The notes under the pieces are model-generated. The model searched no databases. It was not told the origin of the DNA and saw only the letters and a list, made by a program, of their open reading frames with translations. This document shows, in pieces, positions 1,329-63,197 of a DNA stretch of 64,000 bases. Numbering within the stretch: position 1 is the stretch's first letter; the number at the start of each line of letters is the position of its first letter. Origin of the DNA: Trichosphaerium sp. ATCC 40318 (taxonomy: Eukaryota > Protista > Tubulinea); the NCBI GenBank assembly GCA_038496445.1, contig JALMLS010000455.1, positions 806,001 through 870,000 of the forward strand. The letters are read 5' to 3'. A program made the position numbers and the translations under genes.

Positions 1329-2486
1329 ATGTCATCAAAGCGAGGACCATATCACCTTATAGACGATGCACCTAATACTCTATTAAATTTACCTTGTGAC
1401 ATACAACGGTACTTGTGTACATTCAATGAGGAAACATTTAAGAAGTTTCATATCCTATCAAAAAGAGCTGCTATCAACACACACTACAATACTGACCTTG
1501 AGAGAAACGGTCTTTGGATGACTTGGTATCCAAGTGGACATTCAAGATCTCATTGTAGAGTGGTTAATGGAAAAGATATCGGCGAGTTTAAACAGTGGTA
1601 TGATGATGAAAGTGGACAACTTGAAATACAGTGTTGGCTATTTGGAAAAGATGAAAAAGGAGAAGATATCTATAATGGTGATTATAAGCAGTTTTATAAG
1701 AATGGACAAATTGAACTTTGTCATAAATATGTTGATGGTATTTTGAGTGGTAATACTAAATGGTATGAAAACGGACAACTTTACTGGGAAATCAATTATT
1801 CCAATGGTAAAAGAAGTGGTGAGTGCAAAAAATACTATGATAACGGAAAAATCAAAGTTCACTGTTGGTATGTTGATGATAAAATAGAAGGGGAGGCAAC
1901 ACTGTGGTATGAAAATGGAAACATTAAAAAAAAATCAAGTTATAAAAAAGGTATTCAGAATGGTGAGCTAGAGCAGTTTTATGATAATGGACAAATTGAT
2001 ACCAAGTGTTTTTTGATTGATAACAAGGAGAATGGTGAATTTAAACAGTGGTATAAAAATGGACAGCTTGAAGTACTTTGTAGTACTGTTGATAATAATG
2101 TAGATGGGGAGTATAAGCGGTGGCATGACAATGGACAGCTTAACTTACATTATCACAAAATTGATAATGAAATAGATGGAGAGTACAAAGCTTGGCATAG
2201 AAACGGCCTATTGCTTGAGCAATGTTTTTGTGTTAAAGGTATCATAGAAGGAGAGTATAAGTGTTGGTCTAACAATGGTCAGCTATGTCATAATTGTTTT
2301 TATGTTGATGGCAAGATGAATGGTGAGCAAAAAGAGTGGTATACCTCTGGACAACTTAAAGAAATATGCATGTATGTTGATGGCAAAAAAAACGGTGTGC
2401 TTAAGCGGTGGGACGAAAATGGTCAACTTATTGAACAAGAATTGTACGTTTTTGATAAGCTACAACATCAGAAAAATCAACAATAA
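1329..2486 (+). CDS. Intronless F-box-like + MORN-variant (YwqK-like) repeat protein
   Basis: N-terminal LLNLPCDIQRYLCTF (F-box-like), then about 12 repeats of GExKxWYxNGQLxxxCxYxDGKx. Confidence 0.85.
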   Translation: MSSKRGPYHLIDDAPNTLLNLPCDIQRYLCTFNEETFKKFHILSKRAAINTHYNTDLERNGLWMTWYPSGHSRSHCRVVNGKDIGEFKQWYDDESGQLEIQCWLFGKDEKGEDIYNGDYKQFYKNGQIELCHKYVDGILSGNTKWYENGQLYWEINYSNGKRSGECKKYYDNGKIKVHCWYVDDKIEGEATLWYENGNIKKKSSYKKGIQNGELEQFYDNGQIDTKCFLIDNKENGEFKQWYKNGQLEVLCSTVDNNVDGEYKRWHDNGQLNLHYHKIDNEIDGEYKAWHRNGLLLEQCFCVKGIIEGEYKCWSNNGQLCHNCFYVDGKMNGEQKEWYTSGQLKEICMYVDGKKNGVLKRWDENGQLIEQELYVFDKLQHQKNQQ

Positions 2487-7289: not shown

Positions 7290-8610
7290 ATGGCTACTGA
7301 ACAAATTGTACGCTTTAGGCTTGTTATTTGGTTGTTTAATCAAAAAAAAGGCAAATACGCTACAACAAGAGCGTGAGTATCTATTATTCCTTCCAGTAGA
7401 GATACAGCTTGAAATAACAGAGCTAGATACTAATTTACAAACAATATGGCCATTATTTTGCAGAAAAGCGGCAATGAGTACTCGCTTTGATAGCGAGCTT
7501 AACAAACATGGAAAATGGCTTAAGTACAACAAAGGACGTAAAGTACAGCAACTACGATTCACCAGTGGTGAGTTAGAAGGTGAATGCAAGCGTTGGCGTG
7601 TTGATGGTCAACTACGTGAGACTTGCTCTTATGTTGATGGTAAGTTGAATGGAGAGTATAAGTGCTGGAGCTTGAGTGGTTCTTTGGTTAGAAAATGCTA
7701 CTATGAAAAAAGTTTGATGGAAGGAGATGTTATGTTATGGTATAGTAATGGTAAACTATCTCATTCTTACTCTATGGTGAAAGGTGTTAAAGAAGGAGAA
7801 TATAAAAAATGGGATATACGTGGATGTTTAATAACACATTGCTTTTATCTAAATGGTAAAGTTGATGGAGAGTCTACAAACTGGTATAGCCGTTATAATA
7901 AGATTTGTGAAAAGACATTTTATTCAAAAGGAAGAAAAAATGGAGAAAGTACTCTGTGGTATACAAATGGTCAAACACGTGAGAAATGTTTTTATAAACA
8001 AGGTATTAAAGAAGGTGATGAGAAAAGGTGGTTTTTAAGTGGTCAATTAAAAGAGCATAGTTTTTATGTTGATGGTGAGAAAGAAGGTAATTATTTTTAT
8101 TGGCATAGAAATGGGCAACTTTGTCGTCATTCACATTATCTTAATGGTATCAAAGAAGGTGAAGATAAGAAATGGTATGTTAGTGGTAAATTAGAAGAAC
8201 ATTCTCATTATGTTAATGGTATGAAAGAAGGCATATCAAAGAAGTATGATAAGGTTTATGAGAAATACAATGAATCTGTTTATGTTAAAAACAATATCAA
8301 TGGGAAGGTTACACACTGGTATAGTGAAGGTAATATTGCATATAGTTACTTTTGTTATAATGGTAAAAAGGAAGGAGCGTTTAATAGGTACACTATTGAT
8401 GGTATTTTACATCAACAGAGTAACTATGTTAATGATGTTCTTGATGGTGATTGTAAGACTTTCTTCAAAAATGGTAACATACAAGAGCACTATCACTATA
8501 AAAACGGTGTATTGGATGGTGACTATAAGGTATGGAGCAGTGATGGTAAACTAGTTAGATACTATAAATATACCAACGGAAGAAAAAATTGGTTTCGCTG
8601 GAAGTGGTGA
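7290..8610 (+). CDS. F-box-like + MORN-variant repeat protein, paralog of 1329-2486
   Basis: Probable ATG 7290 with a 43-nt intron (7308-7350). LLFLPVEIQLEITEL; linker KAAMSTRFDSELNKHGKW matches RAAINTHYNTDLERNGLW of the first copy; about 14 MORN-like repeats. Confidence 0.85.
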
Positions 8611-39910: not shown

Positions 39911-41380
39911 TTAGCTGAAAAAGCGCTGGAGATTAGGTAATGAATCAATACATTGTTTTGTGATTTTTTTGCTATTTGTATAAAGGGACACAAGAGCGTT
40001 TAAATCTTTAATCCCATTATCTGTAATACTATCACAATTCAATAAAGTGAGCGTCTCCAGACCCTTAAGTGACATTAACCCAACATCAGTAATATTAGTA
40101 TCCGAGGCATTAAGTTTTGTAACTGAAGTGAGATGTTTAAGACCTTGATCTGTAATCTTGACACAATTACTCAAACAAACATCAATAGCTTCTGAAAGTT
40201 CTTTAAGACCTTCATCAGTTACTTGTGTTCCTGATATATTGATTGTACGTACACTACCAGAAATAGCTTTTATACCTTTATCACTGATATTCCTACAGTT
40301 TTTGAGGTTTATTTTCTCAACACCTTTAAGAGCTACAAGACCTTCATCACTCACTTTCGTATCTTGTAATTTGATATCAAAAACACCAGATAACTCTTTA
40401 ATACCTTCATTTGTAACATTTGTGCTAGAAAGGTCAATAGTATGAACACCAACTAATGCTTTCACACCTTCATCTGTCACTGATGTGTAAGCTAGGTTAA
40501 TATACTTTGCACCTGCCAAGTATTTTACACCATTTGAGGTAATATGTTTGCAACCAGACAAATCAACCTTTTGTATACCCGCAAGATGTTTGTGTCTGTA
40601 ATAGAAGTACCTGAAAGACCTATTTGATGCAAAACATTCCCATTTCCTGTCACCAATGCCTCTATCCCAATATCTGTCACTTTTGTACTCTTCAGTTTAA
40701 GCTCATGAACATGTTTGAGCTGACTTATACCTTCATCGGTTATATTCAAACAATGCCTCACATTTATAGAATAAGCTCCATTCAGCGCCTTTAAGCCAAC
40801 ATCTGTGATACTTGAGTGACTCACATCTACTGTATGTACACCTGCAAGGTAGGCATATCCTTGATCAGAGATAAGATCACATTCATGGATATCTACTGTG
40901 TGAACACCAGCGATTGCTTTAATTCCATTGTCCGATATTCCAGGACACTCCCAAATACTTATGGTGTGTACTCCTGCTAGTGCTTCTAATGCCTTATTTG
41001 TTATTTTAGTGTTTTCTTTAATGGCTATATTCTTAACACCCTTTAAAGCTTGAAAGCTTTGATCAGTAAGTGTACGACCAAACTCAGTTGAGAAGGCAAC
41101 CATCATGTTGTAAAGATTTTTCACTGGGCTTCCGCAAATCAGTTCAAACGCTGTCTGTGATTTAATAGTAATATATTCGTATCCTACGTGATAATGTATA
41201 ACGTTTGCGAGCGTCCAGCACGTTTGCGCAGCATCGAATCTCGAATCGTCCAGAAACGTTAATATCACGACTAAAATCTCTGCGGGTAAGTCAATTAACA
41301 CAATTTCGTGTCGTTCTCTAAAACAAACGTTAAAATACTGCGAGTACCATAAAAAATACTAGGACATACGTATCTTGCAT
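39911..41380 (-). pseudogene. F-box + leucine-rich-repeat protein, frameshifted copy
   Basis: MQDT|ERHEIVLIDLPAEILVVILTFL; about 16 LRRs of ITDxGLKALxGVHTIDLS. A small deletion near 40590 (ITD../KHLAG) splits the ORF into 40525-41301 and 39911-40561. Confidence 0.8.
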
Positions 41381-44300
41381 ATTTGACTTTATAGCAACAA
41401 GTAGTACACCTTACAAACAGAAATAACAGTTCTAACACTAAATTAAAAAGTCAACTATGTTCAGCTTTCAAAGAAAATCTAATTTTGTTTCGAACTGTTG
41501 TTGTTGTTCTCAACGATTTATCGGAGATCACCAGAGTTGTACAATCGAAGGCCTTAATTCGACACCTTCTTTTTTTTGAAAGCCTGTTTTGAAAGGAAGT
41601 GTTGACAATATTAACGACTGTGGGTAAATGTACTTTTGCTCTGTAGAGATAATTTTAAAGAAAAAAGCACGATTATTGATGTCTTTGAACATTTGAAGTA
41701 CTGAGACACGATACATCATCACTGAAGCATTTTGGCAATGGCGAATTAAGACAAGTGGCGGAATGAAATAACTGACCTTTTCTTGACAAGAGGTGCTAAG
41801 GGTACCCTCATCTAAAACTTAAACTTGAAAATTGGCCGTTTTGTAACTGTAAAAGAAGAGCTCCAACTTGGAATTATCACAGTTTAGGTAAATAATTTTT
41901 TATTCTAATTACAAAATCAGTCTCCCTTAACAGTAGATGAAAGACTTTGAATCAATCGAAGAAGCTGGTTTACAAGCACCATAAATCAAATCATTATCCT
42001 CATCAAATCCAGGACTCCCTGGACCAACAAACCGCATCATATGCTTATCTTCATCTCTTATACTACTTTGACGAGGTGGCACGTGATTTCCTTCATATTT
42101 AGTGAGAAAGTGGGTTTTACCTGGAATCTCAACTCTACTGTATTCATTGCTAAACTGATGGTACTCGAGGTCACTTATATAAAATGGCTGAAAAACAGCT
42201 ATTGATTGCTTTGATAGAGTATTGCATAAATTAGAATGTCCTCCATTATCTCTAGCTTCCTTGATAATACGTTGGACCTCTGTTGGGTCATCAACAACAA
42301 CAGAATCATCACCTAAAAATTTGGTTTAAAACAAGGACAAACAAAGAATACAACGATATTGAAAAGTATTTTTTCTTCTCATTTTTTTCTTGTTTCCATT
42401 CGTCATTACGTTTGTTTCTTCTTACCGTTTTCTTTTAAAATAATCAGCGTATCATCCACACCATCTTCTTGCATTGGAAGTTGAAAAAAGTTTGCTTCTC
42501 GGCCGTCAAAACATCGGTAGAACCTTTGAACAAACATAAACATGATGATGAATAATTCAAGTTCTTACGTTGATTGATCATCCCACTTACTCCATACATC
42601 AGAAATGTCATTATGTGGTATGTACTTACCAAAAGTTCGGTATTGTAAAGGCAGAGCTATACCAGGAATAGCTTTAATACCAGTCGCATAGTCGTCGTCA
42701 TTTTCGTACATTTTGAAGCGATAAGGTATTCTAAAAATCAGCTTTAAGAAAGTAAAGAAAAAAAAAGAGAAAGACATACCCTGAACCGTGTGGATAGTAT
42801 TCCATACAATTAGGTGATAATTCTTCAAAAACATCATACATTATCTGTGTGGCATATTGTAAGATCACAGGTCCATATTCAGAGTCTTTTTTGTACTCGT
42901 TAAAGCCACAACCTTGAAAAAAAGTTATAACTGTACAAATAAAAAAACTGTTAATAACATACCAAAGAGCAACCTTGCAACTGTATAACTTGTAGCTAAA
43001 ATCTTAGTTCCTGTCTCATCTGATCTATTATGATACGATACAATAAAATCCTAGCATCACAAATATTGTTAAATAGAAGGAGCGAGCGAAACTGAAACAA
43101 TCGGAATGACTTTTTCTCTGTTTGTTGGGTTTTTTTTCAAAAAATCCGCCTAGAACTATTTAACGTTCTGTTTTGGCGTGTTAAAAACATCCTGAGGCTG
43201 ACGAAAACAGAAAGGGTTTGATATTAATCAATAAATTTTTGTGTTTTATGTTCTTGGTATCGTACAATAAACTTTTTCTTAGAAAAATCGTAAACTTGTG
43301 CTTCTCCAAATCCTGAGTCAGCTTGCTTACAAAACAAAGGAATCCCAGTACGTCCAATCAAACACATACATAAACCTTGACCATCATCTTCAAAAGGTAC
43401 TTTCTAAGGCAACAAACATGAGCACACAAAAATACATTCAAAGACCCCTTTTGAGCAATGCTATTACCTCTCTACCATTCCATACATTTATTTGATCTAA
43501 TGTACTATTCCCAAACATACTCGATTTTGACGTTCCTTTACCCGTTTTACACGATGAACAATACGGTTGTACCAAGCACCTTTACCGACAAACGATGGAT
43601 GAACGAATGGAGGTGGAGGTGAAGGAGAAGCCAACAAACCTTAAATTCATCGTTAGTGCTAAAACGAAAACAAGACTTGTTTAAATGTGATCGTTGTAAC
43701 GTACTTCTTGGTGTTCTGAACTTTTGAGCGTAAACACTCTTCCAGTCGATGTTTTCAATTGCTATGCTATGTATAGTAGTACTGACGCGTAGTATATTCC
43801 CTGAGGGAGATAACTCGCGGATGTTTGAGCCTGTACAACGGTTTAACGTCTAATTCGATAGAAGACACTTACAAATCATCCCCCACACTTCTATTGGTAA
43901 CCCACCAAGCTCTGGATCCATCATTGAATTAAAATTTAACGAAGTAGCCTTGAAAAGCGTTAAAACAAAGAAATACATGAAGAAAAAGTGCGTACACTGA
44001 GTGGTATTTTCTTTACAGGCGGTAATGGCGTTCTAGCCTTGGATGTATTTCTTCTTGGTGCCATGCCACCTGTAGACTTTCTTGCCGTTTGCTTTGTACG
44101 TGCCATGTGGCTGCTACTAAGAAATAATTTAATGAATAAGATTTTCACGTGAATAAACGATCACTTTCAGTCAATTACGTGAATTTGTGACACGAGACGG
44201 AATATTGCTTTTTATGTACAAGTTCCAAGAAAGTAATGTCAACCGCAACGTTGTCACTGGTATGAAAATACCTTCGTCAAGGTTCCCGTATAAGGTCCCC

Positions 44301-54001: not shown

Positions 54002-56970
54002 ATGCGTGCTTATGGGTCAGAGGATCGCGCTTTCTATGATAAGGGAGTCTCTAATTTGAAGGCTGGGAACTATCCGGCGGCCAAAAAATGGCTCAAAAAA
54101 TCGTCCAAGTGTGGTTATACAAAAGGTACGTCTATTTGCTCGTTTGTAATCGATTATTTTCCAACAACTGGTTGTTGCTCGCAAATAATCCAAACTCTGT
54201 ATTTACCACTTTCGATATAGCCATGTGCGAGCTTGGAAAGCTGTACAGGGACGGTACAAAAATTGAGCGCGATTTGGATAAAGCCAAAGAACTTTTCGAA
54301 GCTGCAGCGAAAAAGAAGGACTCTGGTAAGCGAACATACTATTTTTGCGCTAACAAATCGTTGTTCAAAACGCTCTGAATTATTTGACAGTTTTATTTTT
54401 TACAATGTCTTAAAAACGATTAAAACCTATTAGATGGGTATGTAAATCTTGGTATCTTGTACATGAATGGTTTGGGATGCGAAATAGATAGAAAGCAGGT
54501 TAGTAAAAAACATTTTTTCAAAAACTTCAAAAAAAAATTCTTTTGCTGAGTGCTGACGTGTCGTAAAGGCGAAAATATACTTCGTAAAGGCTAGTAAGCT
54601 ATATAACGCTGCTGGTATGTGTAATTTAGGCGTGTGCTATGCTAATGGGTATGGTGTTAAAAAAGACGAAGAAAAGTACGTACAAAATTACATTAAACAG
54701 TGTTTAGATAGTTTTCTGTGTAATTTACTAATATACACTATTACTTTTTTTTTCGGGTTTACGACAAAAAAGGAAAACGTAAACGAGAAATTTTTACGAC
54801 TTTACGATTTTTTTTTTTTGTTTTTTTTGCGTTTTGCGTTTTACTCCTGACTAGTCAAAGATCCGTCTATACTGTATCGTAAAGAATTTTCCTTTTACTT
54901 GGCCTCAATCTATTTTTTGTTAATATGTTTTATCTTTCTAGAGCTTTGGCTTATTTCAAGCGTGCTGCAGAGAGGAAGAATGTCAGAGCACAATATAACT
55001 ATGGTATATTCTTGTTAAAGCAGCCTGGTGTTCCAAGAGAACAACGCGCAAAGGCTTGTATAAAATGGTGTAAGAAAGCTGGAAGACAAGGACACCCTGG
55101 CGCCTGCGCTCAAATGGGCTTCATGTATATAAAGGTACAAGACGTCAAATAATTTTTTTTTGAACGTTTTTTTATCCAAATTTCAAAAAAAAACCCAAGT
55201 CTTCACGTTTACAGCCTTTGTGAATGTTTTTTTAGTTTTAAATTATCACCAATATATTATATTACACTAGTTTTATGGGTTTAGCTCACTATTCATGCGT
55301 GTATACGCTGTCAAATATCGGAAATATTAATTTTTCTCTTTTTAGGGATATGGATTACCTGTATCCAAAAAAGAAGCGCTAAGGTGGTACAGCTACGCAC
55401 AGACATGTGGACATCCACGTGTTTCAAAAATAGTAGCTGATCTTAAGAGTGCTAATCCAAACATGTCAACACCTGCAATGTCATCAGTGTCAGGCGCTAG
55501 TAGCGCTACTCCATCTGTATTGACAGACAGCTCTGCTTCTATTTTCAGAGAAGCAAGCAACACTGAAGAAGCGTCTTCCTTCACTGCTGGACGAGACTCA
55601 CGTGCTGGTGACGATATTTCTATTTCACAAAGTCAAGAAAGCTCAAGGATGGATGCATCTTATACTACAAAAGCGAGTATGAGGAGTATTGCTGCAAGTG
55701 TTAAAGAGGCAAGACGTAGAAAGAAAATGAAACCAGTTGTTGTTACAAACGCAGCTCCTAAACAACCAGTCGTTGCAGTTGTTTCAGGTGAAGAAGAAGA
55801 TGACAAAGAAATAGCTTCCCTTGTGACAGTAGATGTTGAAGAGTCATCTGTTTCTCCAAAGAGTCCAAGAACTCCTAGAAGTCCTAGAGCCTCTGAGAGA
55901 GTAGTTTCAAGGAGATCAAGTAGGAAGGGTTCAAGAAGTGCTAAGAAGGTGAAGAGTTCTGATAGTAGAAGATCTTCACGTGCGCATAAAAAGAAGCGAA
56001 GGAAAAAAACATTTGTCAAGAGTGAAAGCGGTTCTTTACTCAAGAGGGAGAGTGTTCGTGGTATCCCATTATCTTTGATTGGATCTACGCCACCTTCATC
56101 GCCACCATCGTCATCGAAACCACCATTGACAGCGAGAGATAGTATGAGAAGTATCACAGCTAGCATTGGTGCAAGGACAACAAGGAAAAAAACAAGAAGG
56201 AAGAAAAAATCGCATAAACGTCAACGTAGCAATAATGATGAACAGCCAAAAGAATTGCTTGTTGAACCTTCAATAACTACTAAAGTAGAAGAAGATAAAG
56301 AGGAGGACAGTATAAAGAGTCTAGAAAGAACTAAGAGAAGTGTTAAACGTCATAGCAGTAAGAAGAAGAAAAGAAGAAAAAGGAAGCACAGAAATAGTAC
56401 CTTGAAAAAGAGTTTTAAAGAAGAAGATGCTTCTGTGGAACCTGAGGCAACAAAGAAGAAGAAACGTGATAAGAAAGAAGCTATTAAAGTTGAAGAAAAT
56501 GATGAGACGCCAAATGAGGACGACGCTAAACTAGATCCTCTTGACGATGAAACACCAAATGTAAGCGATAATCATGACAACGAGGATGCAAAACAAGATC
56601 CTCTTGATGATACTGAGGACAAGGATTCAAAAGAAGATCATGTTAATGAAAGTGACATTACTGCTAACAACGCTGAACACGACAATAAGCAAGATCCTCT
56701 TGATACAGCAGAGGAAGAAAAAGAATCAACTTCATTGGACGAAACCAAAGATGATAAAGAGGGTAGATACCAAGAAACTGAAGAAGAAGAACAAGAAAAA
56801 GAAGAAGAAGGAGAAAATAATGTACATACAAAACAAGAAGAAAGGTCTGAAGCTGAAAACTTGACAGATTCGGTACGATACAAAAAAAAAACCGGTGATT
56901 TTTGCACGTGACTTTTTTTAAACACTTTATAGTTCTAACTTGTTTTTATAAGGACACAGCAACATTGTGA
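54002..56970 (+). CDS. Sel1-like repeat protein with a long Ser/Lys/Arg-rich then acidic disordered tail
   Basis: AMCELGKLYRDGTKIERDLDKAKELFEAAA, GMCNLGVCYANGYGVKKDEEK, AQYNYG, ACAQMGFMYIKGYGLPVSKKEALRWY; final micro-exon DTATL*. Confidence 0.85.
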
Positions 56971-57530: not shown

Positions 57531-57652
57531 TAATGTCAAGGAAAATGGATCAGATGGTATAGAAGCGGAAAAAGTGGAACTCCATGAATACAACTGTCTG
57601 TCCAATAAACAAACTGCAAGTCAACCTAAGTAGTTTTGAGTTTGTGACATAA

Positions 57653-59694
57653 ATGGATGCTACAGGCCAGCAATCACCACCAAAGAAAGTACAAAAAAAG
57701 GTACCCTTTTTTTAAACACCTTCTCATTGATTTAATGCGCGTGTAGTCTGTAACGCCTTTAACCGGTTCAGAGGCCGAGAATACACTTGTAGGACTACCT
57801 AAAGATGTATGGGGAGTTATTTGTATGTTTATCGAGCAAGCTAGCTGACTGCTGACAACTTTAGGCTCAAATATTTACGAAGTGTCATCTGCAAGAAACA
57901 TTCTAAGCGTAAACAAGATCGTACATACCATTGCTAAAGAAAAAGTCAATTGGCGTGGCGTATACGCTCAAAAGTTTAAACAGAAGATAGGCACGTGATC
58001 TAACATATTTTTTCTTGTTTTTTGGTATTGTATTGAGCACGTGATAATAGTAAAAAAAAAGCTGTAAACGAAAGTAGTCACGTGATTATTATAAATGCTA
58101 CAATGACAAATTAATGTTAACTAAACTTTCTTTTCTTGTTTTAGAGTTTCTTGCGTCTCCAAACCCTCCAATACCTTTCGTTCATCATTCATTTGTTGGT
58201 AAATCTTGTTGGTATAACAGACTCGTTCATAGGTCAAAGCTTGGTGAGTCAGAAGTTAGCTGCGACAACTTGAACATTTGGAGAAATATTGAGGTACTTC
58301 TTCAATTAGTTTGTTATTCACAACAATGTAGTCTGCGGCCGATATCAACCTTTCAGGCAGTGAAGATATAAGCTGTTATATAGGGCTAACTGGGATTCCT
58401 TTATTTATTTATGACAAAGAAGAAGATGATCCAAATATCAGCTTCTCCGAAACCTTTTTTCAAGTGGCCGTTTTTAACTTTGAAACAAAACAGCTTGATG
58501 TACACTAATTATTCTAGCACTTTTTGCTCTAAACCTTTATTAGAATTTCATTGTTTCTTATAGCGATCAAGGTTCAGAAACGGGTACAAAGGCCCTAGCA
58601 TTGTCATTTAGTGTAATGCGGTTGTTACAAGGTAGGTGTTATTGGAATGAAAGAAAACTAAAATCTAAGAAAAAAATAGGATTCAAGTACAATGCTTATA
58701 CAAAAGACTCTAACAAAATACACAACTATATTGAAGACTACTTGTATAGTGCACTAGGTGAGGCAGCCATCCCAGATGATAAAATAAGATATGTGTATGC
58801 CAAGGGGTACGTGTAAATCAGCTTTTTCTACAAACACTTTTTTTTTCAACCATATTTCAAATACGCTATGTATGAGCTTATTAAATATCATCTATTGTTG
58901 GCCAAATACATAAAACAACCAAACAGTAAGGGAGGAGTTTTTTGTCATTATAGGACTTCACCCTTAAAGAGTGGCCATTTTCTAATGAACTCGCACTAAG
59001 AATCAGTTTTTTTTTTTGTTGTTAAACCTAATATGCTTTCCAGCAAACCATATCATTTTAAACTATATGAAAATGATGATGACTACGCAACTGGAAAAAA
59101 CCACATACCTGATACTAAATTCTCTTCTTTTAAAAAGATTGGTAACTATATTGTTCATAAAGATGTTAAAGGCATTTTTGAATATTGGGATAATGAATCA
59201 ACGTACGCTATGTTTGTTTAGAATAACAAAGTTACTTACCTCCTATTGAAAGCTTCACACGATGTTTGGACGATCCAAAGATGTACCTAAGCCTGAGGTA
59301 TATAAGTTGAAACCTGCACTCAAAGACATAATTATACTCAAAGAAGAAGGTAAGTGCTGAGCACCAACTTTGAAAAAATCTTACTGTTAGAACAGGAGGC
59401 TTGATATCAGTTTTGGATGACCCTAAGGAGGTTAAAGCTATTGTCCAAGAATGCATAAAGGATGGTGGTATAGATTGTATATGTGAAAGTCTATCAAAGA
59501 AGTCTATGGCTTTGTTTCAAGCATTTCGTAAGGGTGGCAATGAAGAAAATGATGAATTCTTTGATGACTTTCCTGAGCTTTCAAAATCCTTTACATACTC
59601 TGTTATAACAAGATGGGATGGTGGCTATATACCCCCATTGGATGACAATATTTCTCATGAAAACAAACACCTAAAAATCGTACACGATGACTGA
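57653..59694 (+). CDS. F-box paralog of the H3-mimic gene lacking the H3 tail; GC-AG intron; probable 2-nt frameshift near 59300
   Basis: LVGLPKDVWGVIC, FLASPNPPIPFVHHSFVGKSCWYNRLVHR, ETGTKALA, PYHFKLYENDDDYATG, VLDDPKEV; same intron positions as 60367-62671. Confidence 0.75.
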
Positions 59695-60366
59695 ATGTAA
59701 GGATTACAATACGTGTGCCAAAAGTTTTATTAAAATAGAATTCTATTTGTTTTATTTTTGTGCTTCCTCTGTCTTGTTTCCTCATTCGCCACTGTCTGAA
59801 ATCACGGTTATAAAAGATGATGAACACACATGTTTACAATGCTAATACATCTGCAGGTTTGTGACTGAAACATTCTTGTATTTCTTTTTGAGGTACTTGA
59901 CACTTGATTTATCTCCTAGCAGCAATGGGATGAGGATGTAATCACAAGTGACGATTAAATAGATTTGTTGGTGTTCACAATATTTATCCATAAACCCTAA
60001 TCAAATAGATGAAGGCGCATAGCTTATTTGCATTGTGACGCCCTAAGATTCTTTGACGTCCTTTACCGGACTTAACAATGGAAAATACCTTTATAAACAG
60101 TTAGATTACACTATCCTAAATTTAACTTCTTATTTTCATATCCCTAAAATACCAGACTTCTTAGCTGGCCTTGCTGGGGACCTCACAGGGAACCTTGGCG
60201 AAGGTATTTTCATACCAGTGACAACGTTGCGGTTGTACGTTACTTTCTTGGAACTTGTACATAAAAAGCAATATTCCGTCTCGTGTCACAAATTCACGTA
60301 ATTGACGTAAAAGTGATCGTTTATTCACGTGAAAAACTTTTCATTACATTTCTTAGTAGCAGCCAC

Positions 60367-62671
60367 ATGGCACGTACAAAGCAAACGGCAAGAAAGTCTA
60401 CAGGTGGCATGGCGCCAAGAAGAAATACATCCAAGGCTAGAACGCCATTACCGCCTGTAAAGAAAATACCACTCAGTGTATGCACTTTTTCTTCATGTAT
60501 TTCTTTGTTTTAACGCTTTTCAAGGCTACTTCGTTAAATTTTAATTCAATGATGGATCCAGAGCTTGGTGGGTTACCAATAGAAGTGTGGGGGATGATTT
60601 GTAAGTATCTTCTATCGAATTAGACGTTAAACCGTTGTACAGGCTCAAACATCCGCGAGTTATCTCCCTCAGGGAATATACTACGCGTCAGTACTACTAT
60701 ACATAGCATAGCAGTCGAAAACATCGACTGGAAGAGTGTTTACGCTCAAAAGTTCAGAACACCACGAAGTACGTTACAGCGATCACATTTAAACAAGTCT
60801 TGTTTTCGTTTTAGCACTAACGATCAATTTAAGGTTTGTTGGCTTCTCCTTCACCTCCACCTCCATTCGTTCATCTGTCGTTTGTAGGTAAAGGTGCTTG
60901 GTACAACCGTATTGTTCATCGTGTAAAACTGGGTAAAGGAACGTCAAAATCGAGTATGTTTGGGAATAGTACATTAGATCAAATAAATGTATGGAATGGT
61001 AGAGAGGTAATAATAACATTGCTCAAAAGGGGTCTTTGAGTGTATTTTTGTGTACTCATGTTTGTTGCCTTAGAAAGTACCTTTTGAAGATGATGGTCAA
61101 GGTTTATGTATGTGTTTGATTGGGCGTACTGGGATTCCTTTGTTTTGTAAGCAAACTGACTCAGGATTTGGAGAAGCACAAGTTTACGATTTTTCTAAGA
61201 AAAAGTTTATCGTACGATACCAAGAACATAAAACACAAAAATTTATTGATTAATATCAAACCCTTTCTGCGGATTTTTTTGAAAAAAAAACCAACAAACA
61301 GAGAAAAAGTCATTCCTATTGTTTCAGTTTCGCTTGCCCCTTCTCTTTAATAATGTTTGTGATGCTAGGCTTTTATTGTATCGTATCATAATAGATCAGA
61401 TGAGACCGGAACTAAGATTTTAGCTACAAGTTATACAGTTGCAAGGTTGCTCTTTGGTATGTTATTAAAAGTTGTTTTAATTTGTACAGTTATAACTTTT
61501 TTTCAAGGTTGTGGCTTTAACGAGTACAAAAAAGACTCTGAATATGGACCTGTGATCTTAGAATATGCCACACAGATAATGTATGATGTTTTTGAAGAAT
61601 TATCACCTAATTGTATGGAATACTATCCACACGGTTCAGGGTATGTCTTTCTCTTTTTTTTTCTTTACTTAATTAAAGCTGATTTTTAGAATACCTTATC
61701 GCTTCAAAATGTACGAAAATGACGACGACTATGCAACTGGTATTAAAGCTATTCCTGGTATAGCTCTGCCTTTACAATACCGAACTTTTGGTAAGTACAT
61801 ACCACATAATGACATTTCTGATGTATGGAGTAAGTGGGATGATCAATCAATGTAAGAACTTGAATTATTCATCATTATGTTTATGTTTGTTCAAAGGTTC
61901 TACCGATGTTCTGACGGCCTAGGAGCAAAATGTCTTCAACTTAAAATGCAAGAAGATGGTGTGGATGATACGCTGATTATTTTAAAAGAAAACGGTAAGA
62001 AGAAACAAACGTAAACGAATGGAAACAAAAAATAATTTTGTTGCGCCCTTTACAAACTTTAACTTTTCGTATTTTCATCAGCTAAGCTGATAAGACAAAA
62101 AAAAACTCCACTTGATATATCCCTAAAGCTCCGTATGGAAAACACGCACTAACGTTTTATGTACAATGATTTTTTTGTAAGAAAAAAACAAGAAAAAAAA
62201 AAGGCTTTTCAATATCGTTGTATTCTTTGTTTGTCCTTGTTTTAAACCAAATTTTTAGGTGATGATTCTATTGTTGTTGATGACCCAACAGAGGTCCAAC
62301 GTATTATCAAGGAAGCTAGAGATAATGGAGGACATTCTAATTTATGCAATACTCTATCAAAGCAATCAATAGCTGTTTTTCAGCCATTCAATACTCTAAC
62401 AAAGCAATCTGCTTTCCAACCATTTTGTATAAGTGAACTCGTGTACCATCAGTTTAGCAATAGAGTTGAGATTCCAGGTAAAACCCACTTTCTCACTAAG
62501 TATGAAGGAAATCACGTGCCACCTCGTCAAAGTAGTATAAGAGATGAAGATAAGCATATGATGCGGTTTGTTGGTCCAGGGAGTCCTGGATTTGATGAGG
62601 ATAATGATTTGATTTATGGTGCTTGTAAACCAGCTTCTTCGATTGATTCAAAGTCTTTCATCTACTGTTAA
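60367..62671 (+). CDS. Histone-H3-tail-mimic F-box protein with an uncharacterised C-terminal domain (apparently intact)
   Basis: Exon 1 (60367-60477) MARTKQTARKSTGGMAPRRNTSKARTPLPPVKKIPLS; exon 2 LGGLPIEVWGMIC (F-box); in-frame GT-AG splicing to ...KSFIYC*; no histone fold. Confidence 0.85.
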
Positions 62672-63197
62672 GGGAGACTGATTTTGTAATTATAATAAAA
62701 AATTATTAGTAAGTAAGACTGGTAAGAATCATCAGAACAAAAAACTTTGTACTTCTAATAAAATGTTCCTTGTGGCATTCACGACTCTCCTAGTTTGCAC
62801 AACTTCTAACAGAACTCTCAAACTGACACTTTAGGAAAAGAACTGCAAGCAGTTGAGGTTAACCGGCTATCAAACCTAAACGGTTAACCGGTTTGTAAGC
62901 GGAAAAGTAAGACCTCTTACTTAGAATTATCAATCACAGTTTGGTTACAAAACGGCGGTTTTGAATGAGGGTAACTCTTAGCGCATCTTTTCAAGAAAAG
63001 GTCAGTTATTTATTTCATTCCTCCACGTGTCCGAATTCTCCATTGTGCTAACATGCGTCTATGACGATGTCTCGTGTCGCAGTACTTTCAAACGTTACAA
63101 AGGCATCAAAATCGTGCTTTTTTCTTTAAAATTATCTGTACATTTATGGACCCACAGTCAAAACAGACTTAAAAAAAATGAAGGTGTCGAGTTAAGT

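Follow-up and report, generated by a model that had tools for sequence, protein, structure and literature searches.

Proteins beginning with Met-Ala lose their initiator methionine, and a free A1-R2-T3-K4 end is a ligand of PHD fingers and several other modules. Influenza NS1 with its ARSK tail and similar pathogen mimics carry a short histone-tail-like sequence which engages chromatin proteins. Lys-to-Met histone peptides, in turn, inhibit SET-domain enzymes. To our knowledge, no F-box protein carries a histone tail. Among cellular proteins, human proteins with short H3-like N-termini (H3TMs) bind PHD and Tudor readers in vitro (Chen et al., 2021; PMC8166343), and EZHIP represents a natural Lys-to-Met histone mimic for K27 (10.1101/585729). 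Known histone mimicry consists of short motifs in viruses and a few cellular proteins, while the gene described here, termed gene A, carries a whole H3 tail as N-terminal exon. In the literature searched, no description was found of H3-tail/F-box fusions, of the tail peptide with methionine at position 14 (M14), or of cellular proteins with a whole H3 tail.

Comparing gene A with these systems, both similarities and clear differences became visible. Like the human H3TMs (PMC8166343), it encodes a non-histone protein with a Met-Ala-Arg-x-Lys start, whose A-R-T-K end would be free after Met removal and could fit PHD and Tudor readers. However, H3TMs share the first few residues only, and by convergence, whereas in gene A 13 residues are exact and homology extends to approximately residue 37. 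As in EZHIP and the K-to-M “oncohistones” (10.1101/585729), a methionine stands for a modifiable lysine in a histone-like peptide. EZHIP, nevertheless, mimics the internal K27 region and inhibits PRC2, while in gene A the Met replaces residue 14 of a tail located at the N-terminus, a likeness of sequence only. The pathogen histone mimics come from viruses, are short and mostly occupy C-terminal or internal sites; the tail of gene A is cell-encoded, N-terminal and much longer. With the SCF F-box adaptors (PF00646, PF12937) the protein shares an LPxE(V/I)W..I motif close to the N-terminus, two more predicted helices after it and a variable C-terminal region; in contrast to them, its score lies below the family cut-off and its C-terminal region gives no match to a known substrate-binding domain.

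The window, meaning the whole stretch of 64,000 nucleotides analyzed, consists of eukaryotic DNA with 36% G+C and short GT-AG introns. On its plus strand, gene A starts with an ATG at 60367-60369 and its frame ends at a TAA at 62669-62671. Using a donor/acceptor search around conserved blocks, a single solution was obtained, with ten exons, nine GT-AG introns and a frame open throughout for 494 amino acids. With its ten exons, gene A is real, intact and transcribed, and its product of 494 aa is not a histone. Exon 1 (60367-60477) represents the H3 tail module, assigned with the help of PDB H3 peptides. It is followed by intron 1 of 47 nt, from the GT at 60478 to the AG at 60524. A linker and the first half of an F-box-like motif (LGGLPIEVWGMIC) were assigned to exon 2 (60525-60600) by Pfam and the splice model, and the second half to exon 3 (60643-60768) by the alignment to PF12937. 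The lineage-specific region begins in exon 4 (60834-61006) with the LASPSPPPPFVH...WYNR block. The splice model further defined exon 4, exons 5 (61074-61204), 6 (61395-61456) and 7 (61508-61640), exon 8 (61690-61851) with the PYRFKMYENDDDYATG block, exon 9 (61897-61994), and exon 10 including the stop (62259-62671), in which a conserved DDP.EV...LSK.S.A.FQ.F block precedes a variable tail. An AATAAA at 62694-62699 (+), read from the sequence 23 nt past the stop, is a possible poly(A) signal. Exon 10 also contains a 12-aa tandem repeat (FQPF NTLTKQSA FQPF; 62385-62420, +), which copy B, described below, does not have.

Three contigs of low depth from a public run (run X1), which is only guessed to be RNA and has a same-sample companion run carrying small-RNA adapters, matched gene A or its copy B. 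One of 151 nt joins 60395-60477 to 60525-60592 and skips exactly the 47-nt intron, which shows splicing of the first to the second exon in a transcript. This is the junction (60477 to about 60525) which the first-pass annotation had proposed to look for in RNA, and exon 2 opens in frame at 60525, as had also been claimed. The second contig joins 61850/61851 to 61897, covering exons 8 and 9, and has the variants of copy B. The third spans 62461-62677 and thereby covers part of exon 10.

Exon 1 comprises 37 codons (111 nt), which translate to MARTKQTARKSTGGMAPRRNTSKARTPLPPVKKIPLS. Its layout is MARTKQTARKSTGG-M-APR...VKK, i.e., H3 1-13 exact, K14M and a worn H3 15-37, where the match past position 14 (APR, then KA, then VKK near residue 37) is worn, yet recognizable. 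A phmmer search with exon 1 against all PDB chain sequences returned H3 tails only, and 135 different sequences reached E<=1. First among them was an H3 K14M peptide, identical at 17/17 positions over ARTKQTARKSTGGMAPR with an E of 2.8e-6, so that the H3-tail identity is far beyond chance. Against ordinary H3, residues 1-13 were identical at 13/13 positions. Hence both the identity to H3 1-13 and the diverged H3 14-37 (MAPRR..SKAR...VKK) noted in the first-pass annotation were confirmed. Met 14 (H3 numbering), recognized by comparison with the PDB peptide, is encoded by the ATG at 60409-60411 (+) in the context GGC-ATG-G; STGG-M-APR in gene A corresponds to STGG-K-APR in H3, with Met replacing the modifiable lysine. 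The encoded N-terminus has the form of an H3 mimic, with Met followed by a removable Ala, Arg at 2 and Lys at 4. As 13 exact residues together with homology to approximately residue 37 exceed a short motif, exon 1 is read as a captured H3 tail, residues 1-37. None of the exons of gene A matched Pfam Histone (PF00125) at E<=1, while the true H3 ORFs of two metagenome loci (L008, L009) scored 155-159 bits with the same profile. The gene A protein is therefore without a histone fold, in agreement with what had been stated before.

Several observations bear on the position of the tail at the N-terminus of the protein. The distance from the stop of the upstream paralog C to the ATG of gene A is 673 nt only, and no other ATG is found in the final ~130 nt before 60367. 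Comparing gene A with copy B, identity was 90% for the 240 nt upstream, 94-96% for the introns and 98-99% for the exons. The lower similarity of the upstream 240 nt fits a non-coding leader, which makes ATG 60367 the likely start of the gene A protein; the nearest contig begins at 60395. Intergenic distance, the lack of a nearer upstream ATG and leader divergence thus support the earlier assignment of the tail to the N-terminus as likely. ATG 60367 is probably used, and the initiator Met probably removed. A TCACGTGA palindrome is located 35 nt upstream of the ATG (60325-60332, no strand assigned), with nine occurrences in the window versus 0.84 expected. It is also found 39 nt upstream of the ATG of copy B (44145-44152), with another site at 58078-58085, and possibly represents a promoter element. 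M14 was always found in the context GGN-ATG-G; its codon could therefore serve as second start and give rise to a tail-less isoform.

The F-box-like motif LGGLPIEVWGMIC-SNIRELSPSGNILRVSTTIHSIAVENIDWKSVY spans exons 2 and 3. With PF12937 it was aligned in register over profile positions 3-45 of 47; the score of 11.7 bits (E 0.24), however, is below the cut-off of 24.3. Neither PF00646 nor PF12937 matched gene A at the curated cut-off, so the profile (HMM) test which had been suggested for the F-box came out negative. For this reason the motif is named F-box-like and not counted as a proven family member. A protein of clear F-box/LRR layout in the same window (40528-41301) also remained below the cut-off with 19 bits, which points to divergent F-boxes in this organism. 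Conservation of the motif extends to paralog C. An AlphaFold2 model of the F-box-like piece (68 aa, alignment of four rows) showed helices at 19-32, 38-52 and 55-63 at low confidence (pLDDT 56). Using this low-confidence model, Foldseek found no match in the PDB. VIA-align in its wide setting reached a maximum Z of 4.9. Cdc4 was listed with a Z of 3.5, in the company of helical proteins of no relation; these matches reflect common helical arrangements only and nothing specific. The F-box motif as originally claimed is hence only weakly supported, by an in-register alignment below the family threshold and a low-confidence three-helix model. Among PDB sequences, the F-box-like piece matched PCNA alone, which was rejected as chance.

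Past this motif, approximately 390 aa (residues ~105-494) were found only in this lineage. Searched exon by exon, residues ~105-494 gave no Pfam match. The first-pass annotation had described an unrecognized domain of about 300 aa in a protein of about 50 kDa; the absence of a recognizable domain was borne out, while the sizes had to be corrected to ~390 aa and ~55 kDa. A HMMER search with exon 10 (137 aa) against 1.84 billion representative proteins found no relative, not even exon 10 itself, and an exact-sequence look-up of a neighboring gene in protein collections returned no match. Both results indicate that this genome is seemingly absent from the protein collections. In an ESM Atlas feature search exon 10 reached at best 0.79 (DUF3626, DUF3841), which is below the meaningful level, and the lead was dropped.

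Two relatives of gene A, neither of them mentioned in the first-pass annotation, were found in the window. Copy B (44106-41927, minus strand), identified by A/B comparison, is an inverted duplicate, alignable from 240 nt upstream through past the stop. It encodes the identical tail peptide, with a single synonymous difference in exon 1, so that dN/dS of exon 1 is uninformative. The B-type variants in the spliced exon 8-9 contig indicate that copy B is transcribed. Outside the tail it has a 1-nt deletion at codon 137 in exon 4, which shifts the frame, and its exon 10 lacks 36 nt and carries 9 inserted nt. A total of 16 non-synonymous and 7 synonymous changes separate it from gene A, and eight of these, all amino-acid changes, cluster in exon 9. 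Paralog C (57653-59694, plus strand), defined by alignment to A, lies in tandem just upstream of gene A with the same exon order. It is 43% identical to A over ~400 aa and begins with a first exon MDATGQQSPPKKVQKK without the H3 tail, which shows that the family can do without it. Its intron 3 seemingly has a GC donor (GCACGT versus GTACGT in gene A). For the best-conserved blocks of A and C a pS of 0.71 (saturated) and a dN/dS of ~0.13 were determined, indicating an old split with constraint on both copies.

The state of copy B raises the question of whether gene A itself is functional. If it were decaying as part of a duplicated family, or were a frame open by chance, this would go along with a frameshifted twin bearing 16 non-synonymous versus 7 synonymous changes and with expression seen as a few low-depth contigs. 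To this we give hardly any credence, as gene A has an open frame across ten exons with canonical splice sites, a dN/dS of ~0.13 versus paralog C, and spliced contigs exist.

Upstream of paralog C a probable remnant of the tail was detected. At 57607-57620 (+), 33 nt before the ATG of C, the sequence AAACAAACTGCAAG matches the KQTA(R) codons of A at 12/14 nt, with 0.55 such matches expected in the window; in its own frame it reads KQTAS, followed by a stop. The pattern also occurs twice with two mismatches at the border of exon 9, in copy A and in copy B, thus chance matches of this quality do occur. Taken as a relic, the sequence suggests that the common ancestor of A and C had the tail, that C lost it with only a decayed remnant left, and that A kept residues 1-13 exact. 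The decayed relic in C versus 13/13 residues in A speaks for selection on residues 1-13 or for repeated conversion from H3 genes. The constraint on residues 1-13 proposed earlier is in this way supported by paralog C, although H3 conversion could mimic it. Gene A has retained residues 1-13 of the captured H3 tail exactly over a long time, while a paralog lost them. A start of paralog C at the codon equivalent to M14 was also considered and dropped, since the DNA alignment puts its ATG approximately five codons further on.

Viral and metagenome contigs were screened for the tail with a degenerate DNA pattern that encodes MARTKQTARKSTGGMAP. No match was obtained in the viral contigs scanned, while ten metagenome contigs with 31-67% G+C contained the pattern. 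M14 is present in all ten loci by design of the search; it was also found in P0002 and P0004, two predicted proteins identified via homology. Four loci are true complete H3 genes with a natural K14M (L001, L004, the latter with introns, L008 and L009), and natural K-to-M H3 variants seem to occur in several uncultured eukaryotes. Six further ORFs are non-histone proteins of at least four unrelated types headed by the H3 1-17 (M14) tail, a finding likewise absent from the first-pass annotation. In L010 (3528-4253, minus strand) the tail leads directly into ankyrin repeats (Pfam E 7e-28), in L003 (251-913, plus strand) it heads a 221-aa acidic protein, and L002/L005 and L006/L007 form two pairs of related ORFs on contigs differing in G+C content. 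The metagenome tails show 5-19 synonymous differences in 54 nt, which alone is no test of selection because the loci were picked for having the tail. Relatives of L003 were identified via homology instead of the pattern: P0004 (37% identical, on a gene-dense, G+C-rich scaffold of 19 kb) keeps H3 1-37 with M14, the module ending at VKK, P0002 kept M14 while adjoining tail residues changed, and two further relatives had no tail in their called products. The M14 tail is thus found on unrelated proteins in other eukaryotes sampled by metagenomes, and the H3(1-37, M14) module is not peculiar to gene A.

These loci also bear on the origin of exon 1. It might be a by-product of an event in which an H3 (variant) gene donated both promoter and first exon; this would provide histone-like expression with a peptide without a role of its own. 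The module ends alike (VKK, ~37) in gene A and P0004, as for a shuffled exon, the natural M14 H3 genes L001, L004, L008 and L009 could be donors, and paralog C manages without the tail. We nevertheless consider this explanation improbable, given that wear has affected residues 14-37 but none of residues 1-13, that the relic in C decayed over a saturated divergence, and that other families keep the tail across 9-19 synonymous differences in 54 nt, albeit at loci picked for the tail.

The reading which we favor, tentatively and short of calling it probable, is that of a tail-display protein, whose N-terminus engages H3-tail binders, whose F-box-like motif may provide a link to Skp1-cullin, and in which M14 blocks modification. 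Removal of the initiator Met would leave a free ARTKQTARKS end, which could be bound by readers, writers and erasers of the H3 tail. The F-box-like motif might then bring the bound proteins to a Skp1-cullin ligase; alternatively to such delivery, the gene A protein may simply hold H3-tail binders as a decoy. With Met at position 14, this position would be neither acetylatable nor methylatable nor ubiquitylatable. An SCF decoy interpretation appears plausible, with the F-box as its weak leg.

Instead of catching other proteins, the tail might be a handle for the protein carrying it. It could be a signal for nuclear import or an address for chromatin, or else a switch which histone-modifying enzymes operate by K4/K9 methylation or S10 phosphorylation and which sets the location or lifetime of the protein. 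H3 residues 1-28 act as import signal, and automethylation of G9a at a histone-like site reportedly recruits HP1. H3 tail peptides bound to an import receptor (5ve8) were among the PDB matches of exon 1, and recurrence of the tail on proteins without relation to each other (ankyrin and unnamed types) is in keeping with a generic address tag. Such a tag, however, would have no need of 13/13 residues. Moreover, Kap123 uses K14 of H3, the very position occupied by Met in gene A. In summary we regard such a handle as the main rival of the tail-display reading, yet as rather unlikely.

More specifically than in the favored display of the tail to H3-tail binders in general, the M14 tail might act as a substrate trap for H3K14 enzymes, for instance SET effectors of the Legionella RomA/LegAS4 type, followed by ubiquitylation via the F-box-like motif. 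An unmodified, continuous H3 1-17 with M14 would lock onto K14-acting enzymes injected by pathogens of amoebae. RomA reads H3 residues 1-4 and requires an intact continuous tail, and in the same study a K14 norleucine histone was prepared from a K14M construct (PMC13534545). This version is a long shot; if true, gene A would be part of an “integrated decoy” defence which the host has assembled from histone tails. Independent of the particular ligand, if the tails were read or written like histone tails, the histone-code machinery would have unstudied natural non-histone clients or decoys. The recurrent K14M offers an opening for a direct biochemical test.

Further genes were observed in the window. 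At 1329-2486 (+) and 7306-8610 (+) two intronless genes encode MORN_2-repeat proteins (Pfam E 8e-38 and 7e-20), both with an N-terminal LPxEI/LPxDI motif similar to the way an F-box begins and without a Pfam F-box match. An F-box-like/LRR gene at 39911-41301 (-) consists of two ORFs overlapping by 37 nt (40525-40561), due either to a frameshift or to a short intron. An ORF at 55463-56911 (+), located immediately before the paralog cluster, encodes 482 aa rich in Ser, Lys, Arg and Glu, with no Pfam match.
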